Shown here one piece after another: positions 2,517 to 48,046 of a stretch of DNA of 64,000 bases. A program made the translations under genes and the position numbers. Each line of letters opens with the position of its first letter. Positions within the stretch are counted from its first letter, which is position 1. The stretch is taken from the sequence record PQ066597.1. One strand, given 5' to 3'. Below the pieces are notes generated by a model that saw nothing but the letters and a program-made list of their open reading frames with translations, did not search any database and was not told where the DNA came from.

Positions 2517-4553
2517 TTAGTTTTGTGGACCAACCAACTCATCGAAGTTAGCGGAAGTTCCCACGGCGGAGAAGTTCAGGCTAACATAGTTGATAGACCG
2601 TGCTGGTTTGATTAGAATAGTTGCAACAAACTCGTTACGGTCAATAACCGCTGGGGTGTTGTTTGTCTCATCACACACGACACGGAAATCATAGATACCA
2701 CCAAGAGACTTGATAGAATCTAGGTAGGAATTGACCTCACTGCGGAAAGAGTTACGAGTGAACGCATCGTTATTCTCAAACAGCTTATATTTCGCACTTT
2801 CAGAGATAGACTTCTTCAACAGGTTGAACAAACGACGGACGTTGATCCGATCGAATGGGGTTGGTTGAAGACTCATAGTCTTATCACCATACAGAATGAA
2901 ACCTTGACCGGGGAATCCAACTACTGGGTTCATACTGTTTTGATATAGCTCATCACGATGTGCTTGACGAGTCTCGATAGCCAGCTTACGAACGTCTAGG
3001 ATCTGACCACGGTTAAAACCAGCCGGAGACATCCATGGTTGGGCTACTGTGTCTGTACGAGCACACAAACCAGCCATATCAGCAGACAGCGGGATCCAAC
3101 GGTTGGTGTCGTTGTATTTGTCATATTGCAGCTTGTAGTTTGCAGATGTAGAACTGTAGGTGGTTCCTATGTTCATGTTATCATCAACCACAACACCCGA
3201 ATCGGTAACACCACGACGCCATTCAACCATCTTCTTAACAGAAGTTGCTACAGGTAGGTTTACCATGTATTCGCGGGGTGGGCTAATCCAGCCAAGGCAA
3301 TCCTGACGCTCGTCACAGATCGCAGCAACGGATTTCTGTACAGTTGATGCAATTTCCACACCTTCACCAGCACAAGAACCGGCAATAAACAGGTTTACAT
3401 CTACGTGCTCACGGTCGGAGAACATATCCCAACCTTCGATCCAATCACCGGCAGAAGCAGTCGAGTTACCACTATTACCGCCACCGAATGTAAGGATTCC
3501 GGAATATTCAGTAGGCCACGACTCAGCAACACCTTGAATAAAGGTGGAATATCCATTAATGAAGAATTCATCAACATAGATACTGGAACCGTATATATCG
3601 CGGTCATTCTCTTTTACTGACAGAACACGAGATTCAACAGCAGAACCACCAACAAAAACAATCATTGCGAACTGGTCTTTTGTTTGTGGACCATATTCCA
3701 AATAAGAGCTTGGGGTGATATTACCAAAACTCAAACCACTTGGGAAAGTTTTCAGGTTTACTGTATTAACAGAAGAAATCTTACCATCAACACCAAACTT
3801 GTAATAATCTTTGTACGCAATAAATGCGACTTGGATATTATCACCGGTCAGACCGGCATAACGAGAAGCAACAACCGGAATACCATAGGATTCACACATA
3901 TCGATGTATGTTTCGGTCGTTTCGTCTCTACGAAGCAGGGATTCACGGGAATATTCATCATTACGGATATAAATCTTACTATCTTGACGAATACCATTCA
4001 GTACAGCCGTTGCAGATTGACCACTACCGGGACCACCAGAGGTAAATTGGATCTGCCATCCATTTTGAAGGGCTGGGTAATCGTTAAGTTCTTTTGCCTT
4101 TTTGACTACTTCGGCAGTAGAGAATCTAACGAAGGTAATACCACCAACGGAGTTAAGTGCGGACACTTTACCAGTGGTGATAGTTGCACCATTTTGGAGA
4201 ATTTTAACATCGTCACCAATACGATAATCAACACCCGGAGATGTAATAGTATAATCAATTGTTTCAAAAAACGGACTAGAGTTACGTGCTGTATCTTCAT
4301 CAAGAATACGGACGGTACGAAGATCGTTACCATATTTCAGGAAGTTGATCGCACTGAGAACGCTATCAGCAGTTTGATTATCAGGACGACCGAAACGGTC
4401 GATAAGATCGGTCTCGGAAACTAGTTGAGAAATTTGATATGCAGGACCCCACTGGAATTTACCAGCTAGAGCCGCCCGTCCAGTAGATGAACGGGCAATA
4501 GTAGTTTGCATATTATTCTCTTTAGCTTCTACACCCGGAGAAAGTAATGCCAT
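2517..4553 (-). CDS. 18: tail sheath protein gp18
   Basis: MALLSPGVEAKE start, AGKFQWGP, YKLQYDKYND, WMSPAGFNRG, FDRINVRRLF. Confidence 0.97.
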   Translation of the reverse strand: MALLSPGVEAKENNMQTTIARSSTGRAALAGKFQWGPAYQISQLVSETDLIDRFGRPDNQTADSVLSAINFLKYGNDLRTVRILDEDTARNSSPFFETIDYTITSPGVDYRIGDDVKILQNGATITTGKVSALNSVGGITFVRFSTAEVVKKAKELNDYPALQNGWQIQFTSGGPGSGQSATAVLNGIRQDSKIYIRNDEYSRESLLRRDETTETYIDMCESYGIPVVASRYAGLTGDNIQVAFIAYKDYYKFGVDGKISSVNTVNLKTFPSGLSFGNITPSSYLEYGPQTKDQFAMIVFVGGSAVESRVLSVKENDRDIYGSSIYVDEFFINGYSTFIQGVAESWPTEYSGILTFGGGNSGNSTASAGDWIEGWDMFSDREHVDVNLFIAGSCAGEGVEIASTVQKSVAAICDERQDCLGWISPPREYMVNLPVATSVKKMVEWRRGVTDSGVVVDDNMNIGTTYSSTSANYKLQYDKYNDTNRWIPLSADMAGLCARTDTVAQPWMSPAGFNRGQILDVRKLAIETRQAHRDELYQNSMNPVVGFPGQGFILYGDKTMSLQPTPFDRINVRRLFNLLKKSISESAKYKLFENNDAFTRNSFRSEVNSYLDSIKSLGGIYDFRVVCDETNNTPAVIDRNEFVATILIKPARSINYVSLNFSAVGTSANFDELVGPQN

Positions 4554-4566
4554 TTTTATTTTCCTT

Positions 4567-6489
<1,923 letters not shown>

Positions 6490-42211: not shown

Positions 42212-43201
42212 ATGGGTAGTTTTAATACTGTTTGTTCTGTTAGTCGTCAAATCGTTCAAGGTGGTGATAAAGTTCGCTTGATCCCAGTTGCTGGTAAACA
42301 CTGTATTAGTGCTTTCCCACTTACTGCGGTGTATGACGATTATGGTGAGTTTGACATTGATGATAATCTTGCGTTAGAATGCTTAATGAAAAACGTATCC
42401 ATGTTTAACGATGGTGTCTCTAAAGAGAACTTAGCCCATGGATTTTATCCATACGATGAAAATCGTTGGACAATCCCAGACCTATGGAGCAAAACAAAAT
42501 ACGAGACTTCTTTTATTGTAGTAAAGTCTGATGTATACGATCTCGTTTCGGAGTTTGGTATTACTTGTTGGTGGGAGAAACCTGTATACGACGTTTCTGA
42601 TGCAGATGACTGGCTACCGGTAACACCGGAACGAGTCGCTAGACATCTTAAAACTCTCCAAGAAAGACTGAAAGAGTTGGTCGAAGATAGTGAAGACCCA
42701 GAAGATGATATCCTTGTGAATCATGTTAAGATCATGATTGATAATGTTCATATTGGTAATGCAAAACATTATGAACTTAGCAGATTGATTAAAACTCAAG
42801 ATCAGATTAATGATTATGCTCATCACGACGATACAACTTATGCAATCTTCAAAAATATTGAAGAATTTGCAAAATTAGAAAATTTTTATGCTGGTTGTAA
42901 TAACTTGGATATTGTGCTAACATCACAGGAATATGGTCGTCAGACATGCAAGCAGTTTGAAAAGGTTCGTATGATGACAAAAATCCAGATTGTTGGGTTT
43001 AACCAAACAGAAAAAATTCAGTTGACTCCGGTTGAATGGGATGTTAAGATTCCTTACTCTATGGTTGTGGAATCAACTAAACCAAATTGGTCAAATGAAG
43101 TTGATTTGATTCGAGTTGGTGACTGTCTTGAAATTACGGACTCTAAATACAATGAGTTCAAAGAGTATAAGCACGATGATGTTTATCTGAGTGAGAAATG
43201 A
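42212..43201 (+). CDS. hypothetical protein
   Basis: MGSFNTVCSVSRQ start coupled to the upstream stop. Confidence 0.75.
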   Translation: MGSFNTVCSVSRQIVQGGDKVRLIPVAGKHCISAFPLTAVYDDYGEFDIDDNLALECLMKNVSMFNDGVSKENLAHGFYPYDENRWTIPDLWSKTKYETSFIVVKSDVYDLVSEFGITCWWEKPVYDVSDADDWLPVTPERVARHLKTLQERLKELVEDSEDPEDDILVNHVKIMIDNVHIGNAKHYELSRLIKTQDQINDYAHHDDTTYAIFKNIEEFAKLENFYAGCNNLDIVLTSQEYGRQTCKQFEKVRMMTKIQIVGFNQTEKIQLTPVEWDVKIPYSMVVESTKPNWSNEVDLIRVGDCLEITDSKYNEFKEYKHDDVYLSEK

Positions 43202-43445
43202 TATTATGTTTTTAGAAACAGAAAAAGTAAATTGTGCGGGAAGAATATACCCGCTAGATATCGCAAACCAAATATGTTCTGTTCAGCCTATAGACCCAGA
43301 GCCATTTCGAAAACTATATGAGCGGGCTAAAGAGAACGAACGTATTAAGATTCGGCTTTCTAAAGCTTTTATGGTCCCGGTATCAAGGATCGACGCATAC
43401 TGTGTAGAAGCATATCGACTTGGTATAAAAGAAAATAAAAGTTAA
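43191..43445 (+). CDS. hypothetical protein with N.AGRIYP motif
   Basis: ORF track; overlaps the upstream stop. Confidence 0.55.
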   Translation: MRNDIMFLETEKVNCAGRIYPLDIANQICSVQPIDPEPFRKLYERAKENERIKIRLSKAFMVPVSRIDAYCVEAYRLGIKENKS

Positions 43446-43482
43446 ACATCCTTTCTAACTGTGATATGATGTTTATATAAAT
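43433..43482 (+). promoter_or_regulatory. early-type promoter, copy 1 of a perfect 50-bp direct repeat
   Basis: A-rich UP, TTAAAC-17-TATGAT with TGTG extension; identical to 44594-44643. Confidence 0.75.
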
Positions 43483-43484
43483 GA

Positions 43485-43577
43485 GCGTGAGTGGCGAAGT
43501 TGGTTGAAACGCATCGGACTTAAAATCCGATACTGCATAATGGCACATCGTGGGTTCGATTCCCACCTCACGCACCA
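43485..43577 (+). tRNA. tRNA-Leu(TAA)
   Basis: GCGTGAG/CTCACGC acceptor, TCGGA-CTTAAAA-TCCGA, long variable arm, encoded CCA. Confidence 0.95.
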
Positions 43578-43666
43578 AAATACGAGATGATAAACTCAAA
43601 TTCCTTTTTGTTGAATGAGCTTTTTGGACGTTAAACGAGTTTATCATCTCACAAATTCAATATGAG

Positions 43667-43813
43667 ATGCTTAATATGAACGTATATATCAGAAATTACA
43701 TGTGTGGAGTCCTTTGGGGTAGTATCTTCAACGAAGATCACTGTAAAGGTAAATTTGTAAAGATTATGCGTGGTAAACATTTGAAGCCTTTCTATCAAAA
43801 ATCGAGATATTAA
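43667..43813 (+). CDS. 48-aa hypothetical protein (not in ORF track)
   Basis: MLNMNVYIRNYMCGVLWGSIF...QKSRY*, stop adjacent to the next ATG. Confidence 0.5.
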   Translation: MLNMNVYIRNYMCGVLWGSIFNEDHCKGKFVKIMRGKHLKPFYQKSRY

Positions 43814-43814
43814 A

Positions 43815-44204
43815 ATGAAAGTGAAGCTTGGGGCCTATAACCTTAATGAAAAAAGTTCATTGGTTAATACGAATGGTGTAAAATTCATTTTGAATGAACA
43901 AGTTATAGATGAGTTTTCTAAAAAACTACCTATTCTAATCAATTTTGGTCAAAAATGTTTTAACATCGATAATGTCAGAGATACACCAGACCCGGTTGGT
44001 ATTCTAAATTCCATAGAAACTTACAAGAAAGATAATATCATTATTGTTACTGGTGATATAGAAATAACCAATGACAAAGTGTATGATGTTCATGGATGCC
44101 TTCCTTCTTTTTGTGTTCGGTCTCTGGCTAATGGTGACGGTGATACTTATAAAGTTATCGAGATCGTTGCGTGGGATATGGAAATATATGAAGGTTTATC
44201 ATGA
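43815..44204 (+). CDS. hypothetical protein, weak resemblance to prohead protease fold
   Basis: ORF track; N.NG and PSFCVRSL segments. Confidence 0.6.
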   Translation: MKVKLGAYNLNEKSSLVNTNGVKFILNEQVIDEFSKKLPILINFGQKCFNIDNVRDTPDPVGILNSIETYKKDNIIIVTGDIEITNDKVYDVHGCLPSFCVRSLANGDGDTYKVIEIVAWDMEIYEGLS

Positions 44205-44599
44205 ATAAACATGATATTCATCTCATTGGTATTAGTAAGTTTATAAAGAAAGGTCTTACTGTGGTTCAATCAAGTTTGATCTTCAAACAAACCAGTGAAG
44301 AATGGAAAAATATCCATGATGTTGATGTAGACAAGATTTATTGCTATATTAACAACGAGGGAAAGGATATCTACGCAATTGGTAGACTAAAATCCTGTTG
44401 CGGACCTTGGTTGAGTGTTAGTTGTCGGTCTCTCCGTAAAAAAGGTTATATAGCATTTGACTTTAACGATGAAATTGAGATACCATATGGTTCAGGGATG
44501 AAAACTGCTTATAGGGTATTGTTTTCTGACACCCCTAAATACGAGTATGATGAAGAAGCTAGACATCCAGTCGCTTACTTCGAAAAATACTTCAAATAA
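44201..44599 (+). CDS. hypothetical protein
   Basis: ATGA overlap with the upstream ORF. Confidence 0.7.
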   Translation: MNKHDIHLIGISKFIKKGLTVVQSSLIFKQTSEEWKNIHDVDVDKIYCYINNEGKDIYAIGRLKSCCGPWLSVSCRSLRKKGYIAFDFNDEIEIPYGSGMKTAYRVLFSDTPKYEYDEEARHPVAYFEKYFK

Positions 44600-44643
44600 A
44601 AGTTAAACATCCTTTCTAACTGTGATATGATGTTTATATAAAT
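44594..44643 (+). promoter_or_regulatory. early-type promoter, copy 2 of the 50-bp direct repeat
   Basis: Identical to 43433-43482; immediately precedes tRNA-Arg. Confidence 0.75.
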
Positions 44644-44644
44644 T

Positions 44645-44721
44645 GCGCTGTTAGCTCAGTTGGATAGAGCAACGTTCTTCTAAAGCGTGGGTCACTGGTT
44701 CGAATCCAGTACGGCGCACCA
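44645..44721 (+). tRNA. tRNA-Arg(TCT)
   Basis: GCGCTGT/ACGGCGC, ACGTT-CTTCTAA-AGCGT, GGTTCGAATCC, CCA. Confidence 0.95.
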
Positions 44722-44805
44722 CGGGATGTGGTGAAATTGGCAGACACACTAGATTTAGGTTCTAGCGCCATAGGCGTGACGGTTCGAGTCCGTCCATCCC
44801 GACCA
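44722..44805 (+). tRNA. tRNA-Leu(TAG)
   Basis: CGGGATG/CATCCCG, CTAGA-TTTAGGT-TCTAG, variable arm, CCA. Confidence 0.95.
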
Positions 44806-44806
44806 A

Positions 44807-44882
44807 GCGGGTAAGGTGTTTATGGATACATGCAAGCCTTCCAAGTTTGAGTAGACCGGATCGTTACCGGCTACCCGCTCCA
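44807..44882 (+). tRNA. tRNA-Gly(TCC), atypical T-loop
   Basis: GCGGGTA/TACCCGC, U73, CAAGC-CTTCCAA-GTTTG; T-loop ATCGTTA. Confidence 0.85.
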
Positions 44883-44893
44883 AGATTTAAAAT

Positions 44894-44963
44894 TGATGTG
44901 TTACAGCTATCAGCTCACCGTTGAAAGAATACGGATAAGTCGGCTCGACTAAAGAACATATCA
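44894..44963 (+). ncRNA. candidate 70-nt four-way-junction RNA
   Basis: 9-bp closing stem plus three internal hairpins; no CCA or T-loop. Confidence 0.4.
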
Positions 44964-44966
44964 TTT

Positions 44967-45043
44967 GGCCCCTTAGCTCAGTAGGTTAGAGCAGCCGACT
45001 CATAATCGGTTGGTCACTGGTTCGAGTCCAGTAGGGGCCACCA
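44967..45043 (+). tRNA. tRNA-Ile2(CAT), lysidine type
   Basis: GGCCCCT/AGGGGCC A73; near-identical to recalled enterobacterial ileX. Confidence 0.9.
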
Positions 45044-45065
45044 AATTTTTGATGAGAGCTATATT

Positions 45066-45260
45066 ATGTCTGGTATAAAATCCATAATTGAAAATTGGTC
45101 AGTTGGTGATGGTATAATCCACTGGAAAAATGGACGCCATAGTTTAGTAGTCTTTGGGTTTGCTCCAAATGGAGAACCTGCCTTTAAGTTTAAAGGTAAG
45201 AATAAACTTACGTCAGTAAGACAGATTGAAAAATCCATAGTTAATGCATATATTCTATAG
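45066..45260 (+). CDS. hypothetical protein inside the tRNA cluster
   Basis: 64-aa ORF, GAGAG upstream. Confidence 0.55.
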   Translation: MSGIKSIIENWSVGDGIIHWKNGRHSLVVFGFAPNGEPAFKFKGKNKLTSVRQIEKSIVNAYIL

Positions 45261-45425
45261 TCGTAAGCTCTCACTAATTTAATGGTCGTTGACCTTACGA
45301 TAATAATGAAGCGATACAGAGTCCCATCGCTTCTAAAAATATCAAAAGGGATGTTGATGCGCGTATGTAGCCGGGTTATAATGACCAAGATTCATGAAGG
45401 GTGAAAGACCACCCTAAATATTCAT

Positions 45426-45503
45426 AGCGGGGTGGAGAAGTCAGGAGTTCTCACCAGACTCATTATCTGGAAATCGGTGGTTCAAATCCACCCCCCGCTT
45501 CCA
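45426..45503 (+). tRNA. tRNA-Met(CAT), fMet-like acceptor but atypical
   Basis: AGCGGGG/CCCCGCT, CCAGA-CTCATTA-TCTGG, GGTTCAAATCC, CCA. Confidence 0.85.
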
Positions 45504-45504
45504 A

Positions 45505-45581
45505 TGGCGTGTAACTCAGTAGGTTAGAGTGGCGGACTGTTAATCCGTATGTCGTGGGTTCGAATCCCACCTCGCCAGCCA
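45505..45581 (+). tRNA. tRNA-Asn(GTT)
   Basis: GCGGA-CTGTTAA-TCCGT, G73, CCA; one T-T mismatch in the acceptor stem. Confidence 0.92.
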
Positions 45582-45587
45582 AATTCT

Positions 45588-45678
45588 GGATGTTCGGCTA
45601 CGATGGCGGTGTAGCGGCGGACTGTAAATCCGTTCCCTCTGGGTAAACAAGTTGGTTCGAATCCAACAACATCCACCA
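45588..45678 (+). tRNA. tRNA-Tyr(GTA)
   Basis: GGATGTT/AACATCC, GCGGA-CTGTAAA-TCCGT, long variable arm, CCA. Confidence 0.93.
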
Positions 45679-45832
45679 AATAGAAGAAGTTAGAAGACGT
45701 TCTGATAAAATCCTCGGAGACGATGCCCCCTTGCGGTTTTAAACCGTTACGGATAAGCACGGGGTAATCCAAATCAACCATTATAGGGATGTGGTCATCT
45801 GGTATGTAAAATACAGTTGATTTGGAACTTTT

Positions 45833-45908
45833 CGGTGATTAGCGCAGTTGGTAGCGCGTCTGGTTTGGGACCAGAGGGTCACAGGTTCGAGTCCTGTATC
45901 ACCGACCA
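45833..45908 (+). tRNA. tRNA-Pro(TGG)
   Basis: CGGTGAT/ATCACCG, TCTGG-TTTGGGA-CCAGA, CCA. Confidence 0.96.
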
Positions 45909-46186
45909 CTTAGCACAAAGAACGGGTAACGACGTATGCCCCGGAATAAGCCAGCCATAGAGAATCTGGATATCCTGAAACGTGCCTTTAGGTTTCAGGC
46001 GGGATTGGTAGTACAAAGACGATATGGTAACTACCCCTTGACAAGCAGGGTTGAACTTGAGGTAACTGTCCTTTACCAAACAACGAACAGATGGACAAAA
46101 TCGGTTGAACGTCCTTCCTCGATATGATAGCATGTCAACCACATTAGGATATAATCACAGTCTAACGATCCTGATTATAATCCGCT
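45909..46186 (+). ncRNA. candidate structured ncRNA between tRNA-Pro and tRNA-Thr
   Basis: At least 6 hairpins and a possible pseudoknot; no credible ORF. Confidence 0.5.
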
Positions 46187-46262
46187 GCCGAATTAGCTCA
46201 TCTGGTAGAGCACAGCCTTTGTAACGCTGGGGTGGTCCGTTCGAGTCGGACATTCGGCACCA
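46187..46262 (+). tRNA. tRNA-Thr(TGT)
   Basis: GCCGAAT/ATTCGGC, loop TTTGTAA, GTTCGAGTC, CCA; C31-C39 mismatch. Confidence 0.9.
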
Positions 46263-46740
46263 AATTTTGGATTCTCGTCAATAGTCCGGTCTATGAGAAT
46301 CGACGCTTTAAGTAGCCCACCGGTATTTGTAAAAAATCTAGTGAAAGCTAGAAAATAAAAACCGAACCCCGACCTCTCCCATTACTCGAATGGTGATGTA
46401 GGTTCCTTCCCTGTAATAAGGTTCTAGTCCGTGACGGGTAAAAGGTTACATAGGGAGTATTGCTTGTGAATGACCACTGATTCAAGCCATCACATAAGCG
46501 CGTCCGTTATGACGTTAAATATAAGGCTTAGATTCCCATAAGGGCCTAAGCGTAAAAGTAACGAGCAAGACCGTTTTGCAGGCGTAGCCCATTGGGGTGA
46601 TGATGTTTGTATGTTGGGCTCGGATAGCCAATGCTATTAAGTCCGGTGATGGTGCGACCGGATCGATTTACGGAACCACATCAACAAGTATGTGCCTTGG
46701 TGGTTCGACCTGCTTTGCAGCCGCACATGAAGCTAAAACT
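46263..46740 (+). ncRNA. candidate large (about 480 nt) structured ncRNA
   Basis: ORF-free; about 10 helices, a GAAA tetraloop, long-range and crossing helices. Confidence 0.55.
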
Positions 46741-46760
46741 TAAAAAGAGAGGTTGTATAT

Positions 46761-47081
46761 GTCACCGCTAAACGCAAGCCGTTAGGACGTAAAGGTAAAA
46801 ATAGTGTTTTTGTAAATGGTTATACCAATAATGGTATTCCGGTTTTATGTAATGTATTTTATCAGTTTGAAACAAATGGTATTCCATTGGATATTCTGAT
46901 AGAGAAATTTTATAATTCCGGTTATATTATTGATTGGGTTTCTTTCGTTAATGATGCTTTCAAGATCGGATGGAAGAAAGAAACTGTAATAAAAAAGATA
47001 AAGTATGCATTTGATGATATTGAGATAAATGATTCAAATGAAATACTAAACCGTGTGATTAAATACATAGAAAGCCTGTAA
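46761..47081 (+). CDS. protein resembling the AlaRS tRNA-recognition helical segment; start anomalous
   Basis: FYQFETNGIPLDILIE vs AlaRS [14 protein letters not shown]; frame open from 46737; the SD-ATG at 46759 is out of frame. Confidence 0.6.
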   Translation, partial: VTAKRKPLGRKGKNSVFVNGYTNNGIPVLCNVFYQFETNGIPLDILIEKFYNSGYIIDWVSFVNDAFKIGWKKETVIKKIKYAFDDIEINDSNEILNRVIKYIESL

Positions 47082-47091
47082 GGAATGATAT

Positions 47092-47343
47092 ATGGGTAAG
47101 ACATTTCGTCGTAAAAATGAAAAACATCTGGACAGTTGGTATGGTGATGAACTTAAAGTGAATCGGGATCTGGGAGATAAATATCCTAGTTATCCAGAAT
47201 CGGGTGTCAAAGATCGTTATAATACATTGAGTCGTCAGCGAGATCGTAAATTGAAACATGATATCATGCACGGTAATCACGATGTTTTTGTTGATGATGA
47301 TTACGAAATGAAAAAGGCTAACGCCGGTTATCAATATAGTTAA
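47092..47343 (+). CDS. basic hypothetical protein
   Basis: MGKTFRRK start; SD AAGGA. Confidence 0.75.
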   Translation: MGKTFRRKNEKHLDSWYGDELKVNRDLGDKYPSYPESGVKDRYNTLSRQRDRKLKHDIMHGNHDVFVDDDYEMKKANAGYQYS

Positions 47344-47354
47344 GATTTTAAAGT

Positions 47355-47593
47355 GTACGCGCCCCAAGAGTGGCGCAGCGGCGTCAAACAATACGAGTCA
47401 AGGGTAAAGGTGATACCCTGTATTGTCACTAGACGAAAAGAGACCATATTGCCTCGATTATGGTCCCCGTTTTAAAGAGGGTGGTGTGACCTACCACTAT
47501 CACAAGGTTGTTGTCTGACACCAAAGACAACGTTCGGCAACGGGGACTTTATCTTGCTTTGACTGGCTTGATATAGTCCCCGTTTTTCTTTTT
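47355..47593 (+). ncRNA. structured leader/ncRNA ending in a terminator with an alternative pairing
   Basis: Serial hairpins; AACGGGGACT can pair with 47462-47471 or 47575-47584. Confidence 0.5.
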
Positions 47594-47611
47594 ATTAACG
47601 GAGAATTTGAT

Positions 47612-47797
47612 ATGTTGACTGGAATTTTTATTGTGTATTTGATTGGTGTTCTGGTATTCATTACCGCATTTGGGATTACCGATCATCAAGACCGAGAAGA
47701 GGATAGGACCCCTACTTTTAAAGAAGTTATGGATTATCTTTCTGTATCAGCAATTTGGCCCGTTTTGATTGCTATGTCGATTATTCGTAGTCTTTAA
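47612..47797 (+). CDS. small two-TM membrane protein
   Basis: SD GGAG; hydrophobic N- and C-terminal segments. Confidence 0.75.
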   Translation: MLTGIFIVYLIGVLVFITAFGITDHQDREEDRTPTFKEVMDYLSVSAIWPVLIAMSIIRSL

Positions 47798-47836
47798 TCC
47801 CTAAATATGTTCATATCAACTATAGGAGAGTTTTAA

Positions 47837-48046
47837 ATGGCTAAGAATATTCATGAGAAAAGTCATGCCCGTGAGGGTCGTGGTGGTGCCAATGGTGGTA
47901 ATGAAAAATGGTATAACTCCAAACTGTGGGAAAACGTAGAAGCCAAACAGGTTAGTCTGGATGCAAAGCCGGATGAACTGTTGAAAGAGAAAGAAGGTGA
48001 AGACCTTCGAGCAAAACAGCGTCGTATGTTCGCGATGGCTTATTAA
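47837..48046 (+). CDS. hypothetical late protein
   Basis: CTAAATA 47801, SD AGGAG. Confidence 0.75.
   Translation: MAKNIHEKSHAREGRGGANGGNEKWYNSKLWENVEAKQVSLDAKPDELLKEKEGEDLRAKQRRMFAMAY

Follow-up and report, generated by a model that had tools for sequence, protein, structure and literature searches.

A free-standing protein resembling the Mid2 segment of alanyl-tRNA synthetase, encoded in phage tRNA gene arrays behind an out-of-frame start

Introduction

Alanyl-tRNA synthetase (AlaRS) uses an Asn of its Mid1 region together with an Asp at the G3:U70 pair. This Asp, part of the YDTYG motif, is said to have been assigned its contact with G3:U70 by Naganuma et al. in 2014. The subject of this report is a small phage protein that resembles the segment carrying this motif. 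It is encoded in a DNA stretch of 64,000 nucleotides from sequence record PQ066597.1 (the whole stretch is called the window below), on the plus strand at positions 46767-47081 (stop codon TAA at 47079-47081). The open reading frame (ORF) specifies about 105 amino acids, beginning AKRKPLGRKGKN and ending YIESL. The tested part of the window is 100% identical to Aeromonas phage vB_AdhaM_G2. The phages AS-sw, CC2, AP1 and other T4-like Aeromonas phages (Straboviridae, Emmerichvirinae) are 97-99.9% identical to the window.

The closest known counterpart of the protein is the second half (Mid2) of the AlaRS tRNA-recognition region, as known from A. fulgidus, from the C-terminal mixed alpha/beta domain of A. 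aeolicus AlaRS453 and from residues ~375-440 of the E. coli enzyme. The recognition domain of AlaRS and bacterial GlyRS ("ATL") is reported to have no other homologues in UniRef90, and a C-terminal decoration found only in AlaRS is said to assist in reading both strands at G3:U70 (bioRxiv 10.1101/2023.05.29.542759). A mini-AlaRS which keeps the catalytic domain has been characterised from Tupanvirus (PMC10036535). The Tupanvirus mini-AlaRS and "small-AlaRS" are likewise reduced AlaRS derivatives acting on the acceptor stem, and the Tupanvirus form is also virus-borne. However, both retain the catalytic domain and charge tRNA, which the phage module cannot do. AlaX and YbaK follow the same principle, a synthetase sub-domain freed as a trans-acting protein. 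AlaX, though, is an editing domain (tRNA_SAD) and an enzyme, whereas the phage protein would be a recognition module; no Pfam match to tRNA_SAD or an editing domain was found in the window protein or in 119 members of its family.

Relationship to AlaRS

An exhaustive search with a hidden Markov model (HMM) built from seven sequences found 509 representative homologues (clusters at 50% identity, counted at E<=1e-3), mostly of 90-120 amino acids. The family is phage-borne, unnamed and usually located within tRNA gene arrays, and no paper on such a phage protein was found in the literature. One HMM match, the 1333-aa repeat protein P0126, was discarded as a spurious hit to the region of the beta-hairpin described below. 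An alignment of 119 family members (A5) is the basis of all Pfam, PDB-profile and column counts given here.

The AlaRS family PF01411 was matched by 70 of the 119 members at E<=1 (best E 9.7e-10). All of them fell on one stretch of the 552-position profile (~376-436), and any other Pfam family was matched by two members at most. When the 119-member profile was compared with all PDB sequences, AlaRS took the first six places (E 0.015-0.037), with alignments to E. coli residues 394-420, which contain the YDTYGFP motif, and to A. aeolicus residues 372-413. The aligned profile string reads 'EdgkpVvsg..vFklvdthGlpLdiileelkekglvidWidF', and shares with Mid2 a strand, a helix, the (D/E)(T/S)xGxPL(D/E) loop, another helix and an 'hhDxxxF' element. 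An earlier note on this DNA, written from the letters alone, had aligned the protein by eye to an AlaRS peptide. The peptide turned out to be authentic (E. coli AlaRS residues 394-427, PDB 3hxu), and the profile alignment reproduced the register of the note.

In the window protein the counterpart of the AlaRS motif is the family signature NVFYQFETNGIPLD (46851-46892, plus strand), located by the profile alignments, the PF01411 segment and the column frequencies. Glu occupies the position of the AlaRS Asp (codon 46869-46871). In the family this column contains Asp in 51 of 119 members, Glu in 28, Ser in 15, Gly in 11 and Asn in 8, and the Thr/Ser, Gly, Pro and Leu of the loop are near-invariant. 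Judged by these sequence profiles, the protein is homologous to the second half (Mid2) of the AlaRS tRNA-recognition region, the part bearing the YDTYGFP loop.

An AlphaFold2 model of the protein (m98d405e23d63; mean predicted local distance difference test, pLDDT, 87.9; predicted template modelling score 0.78) consists of a disordered basic tail, a beta-hairpin and five helices. The Lys/Arg-rich tail AKRKPLGRKGKN (46767-46802, plus strand) is predicted to be disordered, with pLDDT <50 at residues 1-4 and a mean of 48 over the first ten; basic tails are found throughout the family. The predicted hairpin spans residues 15-29 in the 105-aa numbering that starts at 46764 (46806-46850, plus strand). 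Foldseek searches of PDB and AFDB and a VIA search with the model gave no significant match. AlaRS recurs among the weak matches in two structure libraries, with a root-mean-square deviation of 1.4 A over 38 columns for E. coli 3hxu. In the VIA search model residues 8-82 aligned to 356-453 of a 3htz chain (Z 4.6, 24% identity) with a compatible order of secondary structure elements. The comparison with AlaRS structures proposed in the earlier note thus did bring AlaRS up repeatedly, but within a helical background, so that it does not discriminate. Equally high scores were obtained for unrelated helical proteins, so the fold agrees with homology but does not decide the matter.

It could be argued that the likeness is a convergent helix-loop-helix in an unrelated small helical phage protein, and that its setting among tRNA genes is incidental. 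BLASTP found nothing to align between the ORF and the AlaRS peptide at E<=100, the window protein alone had no match in Pfam, and PDB searches with the single sequence or a six-sequence profile did not return AlaRS; the relation emerged only with the exhaustive HMM search and the 119-member profile. The individual Pfam matches are under the gathering score of 30.3 bits, the E-values of the profile against PDB are just ~0.02, and the structural Z lies inside the background. On the other side, 70 of 119 members independently match the same 60-position stretch of the same model, the best of them at E 9.7e-10, and AlaRS is the top PDB match by sequence profile and recurs in both structure libraries. 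The aligned stretch includes not only the loop but also the preceding strand, the following helix and the 'hhD...F' element. In addition, the nucleotide cassette at the 5' end of the gene is common to bona fide AlaRS homologues (see below). Convergence is therefore given little credence.

The protein comprises only this segment. The class II catalytic core is absent (the ORF has ~105 codons and family matches cover the ~376-436 stretch of PF01411 only), and so are Mid1, the editing domain and C-Ala. The protein cannot aminoacylate. It differs from AlaRS in being free-standing, in the added Lys/Arg tail and in the Glu at the G3:U70-contacting position. The earlier note was right that the N-terminus is basic, that Glu replaces the AlaRS Asp, that there is no catalytic domain and that the window lacks tRNA-Ala. 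Its picture of a stand-alone protein like the AlaRS recognition segment is borne out by the profiles, and the tie to tRNA genes by the family loci described below. The protein would thus be a Lys/Arg tail, a beta-hairpin and a five-helix bundle descended from AlaRS Mid2.

Reading frame and annotation

The frame 46737-47081 is indeed open and its translation is the one first given. Position 46737, however, is merely the first codon after a stop and not the start of a gene, and there is no ATG, GTG or TTG in this frame before TTG 46887. The frame is unbroken in eight diverged relatives, and a single continuous frame with amino acids conserved over the full length is found in phages 65.2, avDM6, ZPAH1, Aswh_1 and Ahp1 and in metagenome contigs L014-L017, at DNA identities down to 65%. 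In the 37 codons 5' of the TTG, pairwise differences number 201, 147 and 497 at codon positions 1, 2 and 3. In the ORF frame 387 differing codon pairs are synonymous and 259 non-synonymous, compared with 47/582 and 53/577 in the other two frames. As a coding pattern is seen in the ORF frame only, the N-terminal part is translated. The gene is real, and purifying selection acts on all of it, the 40-odd codons 5' of the TTG included.

These data bear on the alternative that only a 64-aa C-terminal ORF is made from TTG 46887 (46887-47081, plus strand), with the upstream part as an untranslated leader. The TTG is the earliest canonical in-frame start, and the 64-aa ORF is what gene callers report (in AP1 and in PHROG 22967). 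However, the preceding codons evolve as coding sequence in this frame alone, and the TTG is replaced by TTA or CTT in relatives, so that gene callers choose different starts in different genomes, or none. Distant homologues with ordinary ATG starts include the hairpin and the motif, and the TTG sits within the most conserved motif. The short product as sole product is extremely improbable.

The annotation of the gene is poor. The GenBank record of the window has nothing at 46737-47081, the AP1 record has just the 64-aa ORF from TTG, and in the records of phages 65, ZPAH1 and Aswh_1 nothing is annotated. PHROG 22967, a 64-aa model of unknown function without the AlaRS-like motif, matches the ORF at E 1.6e-41 over residues 51-114 only (counted from 46737); distant family members match it as well. 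Both the 64-aa annotation and PHROG 22967 are truncations which start within the most conserved motif. The family is invisible to annotation because it has no in-frame start: gene callers skip the gene or cut it within the key motif, and the PHROG model inherits the cut.

In the phage 65 record (L003, GU459069) single-base insertions in A6 and C4 runs (2775-2790 and 2870-2885) break the gene. As they lie in such runs and are absent from the resequenced 65.2, they are taken as sequencing errors. In metagenome contig L014 (495-520) the ORF is fused in frame to the downstream PHROG 1774 gene (...YIEPIKENGMGKT...), probably through a one-base difference or an assembly error.

Out-of-frame start and probable recoding

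The conserved start at the locus is out of frame. A Shine-Dalgarno (SD) sequence, GAGGT (46749-46753, plus strand), lies 5 nt upstream of an ATG at 46759; it is invariant in relatives and forms positions -10 to -6 of the sequence logo. SD and ATG are both invariant in all Aeromonas relatives, and the ATG is one base off the ORF frame. The ATG frame is +1 relative to the long ORF, which is therefore in the -1 frame of the ATG. In all three-frame translations the ATG frame is short: it reads MSPLNASR and ends at TAG 46783-46785 (46759-46785, plus strand). A short zero-frame ORF thus overlaps a long conserved -1 ORF that lacks its own start. In relatives the leader frame stops after 6-24 codons, at non-conserved places.

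The start region is more conserved than the gene. Its 27 nt GAGGTTGTATATGTCACCGCTAAACGC are conserved far better than the coding sequence after them, even in relatives of 65% identity. The core, ATG TCA CCG CTA AAC GCA (46759-46776, plus strand), occurs once in the window, where 0.01 chance matches are expected. Read in the ORF frame it contains GCT AAA CGC, Ala-Lys-Arg (46767-46775). Distant family members have GGAGGATGCT ATG TCA CAG CTA AAC GCA directly 3' of a tRNA gene (L018, L020, L096, L150, L152-L155). In other members the start is of the ordinary in-frame kind and its sequence unrelated, examples being MSKRKNRN and MAKRKPK.

Several simpler accounts of the offset were rejected. A sequencing error is ruled out, since all independent genomes and contigs show the offset, and a DNA contig from a separate run spans the cassette with no indel. 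Non-canonical in-frame initiation fails for want of a near-cognate codon in the stretch from the upstream stop to the conserved region. Neither inspection by eye nor RNAalifold found a conserved hairpin around the AUG. No contig from the RNA runs covered the cassette; contigs from two RNA-labelled sequencing runs begin at 46781 and 46786, just past the leader frame, at a depth of 2-4 that may reflect chance.

Recoding is thus likely to be needed to make the protein. Ribosomes would start at the SD and AUG 46759 and have to enter the -1 frame by the sixth codon. A_AAC (46770-46773) would be the sole site for -1 re-pairing, with the Ala codon GCA (46774-46776) in the A site; in all cassettes A_AAC (A_AAA in L152) is followed by an Ala codon, usually GCA. 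Candidate mechanisms are a P-site slip at A_AAC, doublet or out-of-frame decoding at AAA, a back-hop of tRNA-Ala between two GCN codons, and a change at the RNA level. A hop of the T4 gene 60 type was considered for the sequence CGT TAG GA CGT of the window. It was rejected because relatives do not keep the matched codons around the TAG: in ZPAH1 and Aswh_1 both the stop and the matched codons are missing.

Known recoded genes offer a partial parallel. As in the frameshift genes prfB (+1) and dnaX (-1), which have a regulatory read-out, and in T4 gene 60 with its bypassing, a short frame with a strong SD and AUG ends early, a conserved protein lies in another frame, and the nucleotide sequence at the switch is retained even in distant relatives. 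Unlike in these genes, the switch would occur within the first six codons and without a heptamer, the position of the leader stop is not conserved, and one cassette serves several unrelated genes.

The start cassette in other gene families

The consensus of the start region over ~27 nt is GGAGGATGCT-ATG-NCA-NNG-CNA-AAC-GC. IMG/VR was scanned with the pattern GGAG-N4-8-ATGNCANNGCNAAACGC, and sites were called leader-type when the ATG frame was shorter than 25 codons and a -1 ORF had at least 60 aa. Among the 89 pattern matches 47 were leader-type, nearly all with the extended consensus. Where the extended consensus was present, the ATG frame was never the one with the long ORF; the in-frame sites differ in their upstream sequence and seem to match by chance. 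In a logo of 56 distinct sites conservation is confined to -10..+19, and variant cassettes retain A_AAC or A_AAA with GCN after it. When 596 Gb of bacterial and archaeal genomes were searched for a 23-nt version, it was found once, on a phage-like contig of 5 kb.

The cassette precedes at least six unrelated ORF families (A-F), the ORF is always in the -1 frame, and nearly all of these ORFs are inside tRNA arrays. Family A is the AlaRS Mid2-like family. Family B is a mini-AlaRS of 274-295 aa (PF01411 E 3e-16 to 3e-19) found on phage contigs of 48-437 kb (L082:6878-7762:+, L145:5910-6764:-, L165:520-1341:-, L174:4675-5517:-). Family C (100-127 aa; alignment A6) is the commonest other user of the cassette, with L041:1071-1451:+, L076:1182-1481:+ and ~25 more loci in tRNA arrays of large phage contigs. 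Its pattern is ..NGVSKKFRRMSELYR.F..LDFSDEAL..LYNHESYG.P...PHWWLDS. Family C has no relatives in Pfam, PHROG or PDB, and its AlphaFold2 model has a pLDDT of 85.6. Kinship with AlaRS or family A was rejected (hhalign to family A: 2.6% probability). The single bacterial and archaeal hit above carries a family C gene with the shortest leader observed, six codons (MTQLNA-stop). Families D (L167, L178, L192, L205, L215, L224, L225), E (L158, L217) and F (L173) mostly adjoin genes for tRNA-Val, tRNA-Pro or tRNA-Leu.

Because other small ORF families and the mini-AlaRS use the same start, the cassette is probably a shared recoding or regulatory device, and it may couple synthesis to tRNA supply. An alanine-specific sensor is not implied, since families C to F show no kinship with AlaRS.

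The mini-AlaRS bears on the main rival to acceptor-stem binding, namely that the small protein acts on a synthetase, either as a trans subunit completing the phage mini-AlaRS or as a decoy or modifier of host AlaRS (similar in concept to the T4 valyl-tRNA synthetase modifier). The mini-AlaRS ends just past its own DT.G-like motif (LFWADTFGFQV, WWWETHGIDI), so it lacks most of Mid2, and it shares the start cassette with family A. However, no mini-AlaRS was found in any cultured phage with family A: a tblastn search of 50,697 phage records gave as its sole match the uncultured 635-kb phage LR745206. The two did not co-occur in the examined loci either, though these loci are short. The small protein also keeps its own motif helix, and would therefore overlap the C-terminus of the mini-AlaRS and not complement it. 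On this evidence it is unlikely that the protein partners or modulates an AlaRS, though less so than convergence.

Genomic setting

In the window the gene stands at the 3' end of an array of ten tRNA genes with small ORFs between them (43485-46262, plus strand; ARAGORN, Rfam and the vB_AdhaM_G2 annotation). The order is Leu, Arg, Leu, Gly, Met, Met, Asn, Tyr, Pro, Thr, and ARAGORN found no tRNA-Ala among the ten. Co-occurrence with tRNA clusters, suggested at the outset as a check, holds in the family: tRNA genes are within 3 kb in 15 of the 17 family loci examined, frequently at 0-150 nt and on both sides. A tRNA-Ala gene is a neighbour in Ahp1, L016, L153, L154 and L233, and most loci are without one.

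Binding of acceptor stems in trans is the most likely activity of the protein, and a plausible one, because of its apparent descent from the acceptor-stem reader of AlaRS, its basic tail and its residence in tRNA arrays. It would then be an accessory factor for phage or host tRNAs, which it would protect, present or sequester.

Between the array and the gene lies a non-coding spacer (46263-46740, plus strand) in which two blocks are conserved between phage genera (alignment A7). The blocks span Ceceduovirus-like and Ishigurovirus phages (also L004 310-735 and L005 285-630). Block 1 (46265-46335) is a hairpin, GGATTCTC...GAGAATC, with one compensatory change of T:A to C:G; block 2 is at about 46523-46660. 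The folding z-score of the spacer is -1.97. ARAGORN found no tmRNA in it, and Rfam at E<=1 gave only tRNAs in 43000-48000. The blocks may be small stable RNAs like T4 rnaC and rnaD.

The earlier note had raised the possibility that this large RNA and the protein form a system of their own. The conservation across two genera and the compensatory change in the hairpin would fit such an RNA-protein pair of about 480 nt of structured RNA and its neighbour. In ZPAH1, Aswh_1, L018, L020, L154 and other loci, including all distant homologues, the gene directly follows or is flanked by ordinary tRNAs and no such RNA is upstream. In AP1 and P19 a tRNA-Trp gene is inserted in the spacer near 46656, no Rfam family matches, and the z-score is modest. 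As the spacer is absent beside the gene elsewhere it is not a conserved partner, and the suggestion was dropped as very improbable.

Downstream of the gene is an 83-aa gene of PHROG 1774 (47092-47343, plus strand), a family of unknown function, which is syntenic with the long ORF in Aeromonas phages. In Klebsiella jumbo phage FBKp24 the homologue (L151 2471-2740) lies two genes upstream of an RtcB tRNA ligase gene (4059-5222); this homologue has an ordinary start and lacks the hairpin. In L234 (2001-3055) the homologue overlaps a Peptidase_M24 (methionine aminopeptidase-like) gene. In L152 ARAGORN predicts a tRNA with a four-base anticodon (cttg; 1557-1635) in the same array as a cassette-bearing family member, possibly a tRNA of the frameshift-suppressor type.

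Discussion

Taken as a whole, the explanation preferred here is that the locus encodes a ~105-aa protein derived from AlaRS Mid2, which binds acceptor stems in trans and is produced from an out-of-frame start by a -1 shift. This combination is considered fairly probable, with somewhat less assurance than the need for recoding alone.

A number of observations weigh against it. On the side of the protein, a lone Mid2 is without the Mid1 Asn, so that half of the AlaRS recognition cleft is absent, and the acidic residue at the Asp position varies within the family. The best unrelated helical match to the model (Z 5.8) is above that to AlaRS. On the side of the start, in-frame homologues such as P0017 begin MAKRKPK, and one ENA metagenome contig (L015, ~2497-2500) has ACG for the cassette ATG. 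The latter change, TAT to TAC, is synonymous in the ORF frame, and the ATG is retained in two sister contigs. There is no X_XXY_YYZ heptamer: the tetramer A_AAC alone re-pairs, and the preceding CNA cannot. No well-supported downstream structure was found either, RNAalifold giving -6.7 kcal/mol and one 5-bp long-range stem; weak covariation is seen at two of its pairs and its spacing is inconstant owing to a 6-nt insertion in Ahp1. Finally, the two cassette nucleotides that vary freely, 8 and 11, each fall on the third position of an ORF-frame codon (ACN, GCN). This suggests that Ala-Lys-Arg itself is translated; the switch would then precede nucleotide 9, and no tRNA can re-pair there.

A bolder version can be put forward tentatively, although it is rather doubtful. 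GGAGGATGCT-AUG-NCA-NNG-CNA-AAC-GCN would be an undescribed, phage-specific recoding cassette, in which an obligatory -1 shift is tuned by the supply of charged tRNA (Asn, or Ala at the A-site GCN codon), and the protein would be the first free-standing synthetase-derived acceptor-stem reader. If this were true, the phage would tune its tRNA-helper proteins to the tRNA pool, for example after attack by a host tRNA nuclease.

A tRNA-recognition sub-domain of a synthetase, reported to be confined to AlaRS and bacterial GlyRS, circulates free-standing in hundreds of phage lineages. Located where phages keep their tRNAs, it offers a concrete candidate for a phage factor dealing with the acceptor stems of tRNAs. 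The shared out-of-frame cassette suggests a general rule for the expression of small ORFs in phage tRNA arrays. Should the device be a frameshift that responds to tRNA supply, phage tRNA genes and translation would be connected by a new regulatory link.

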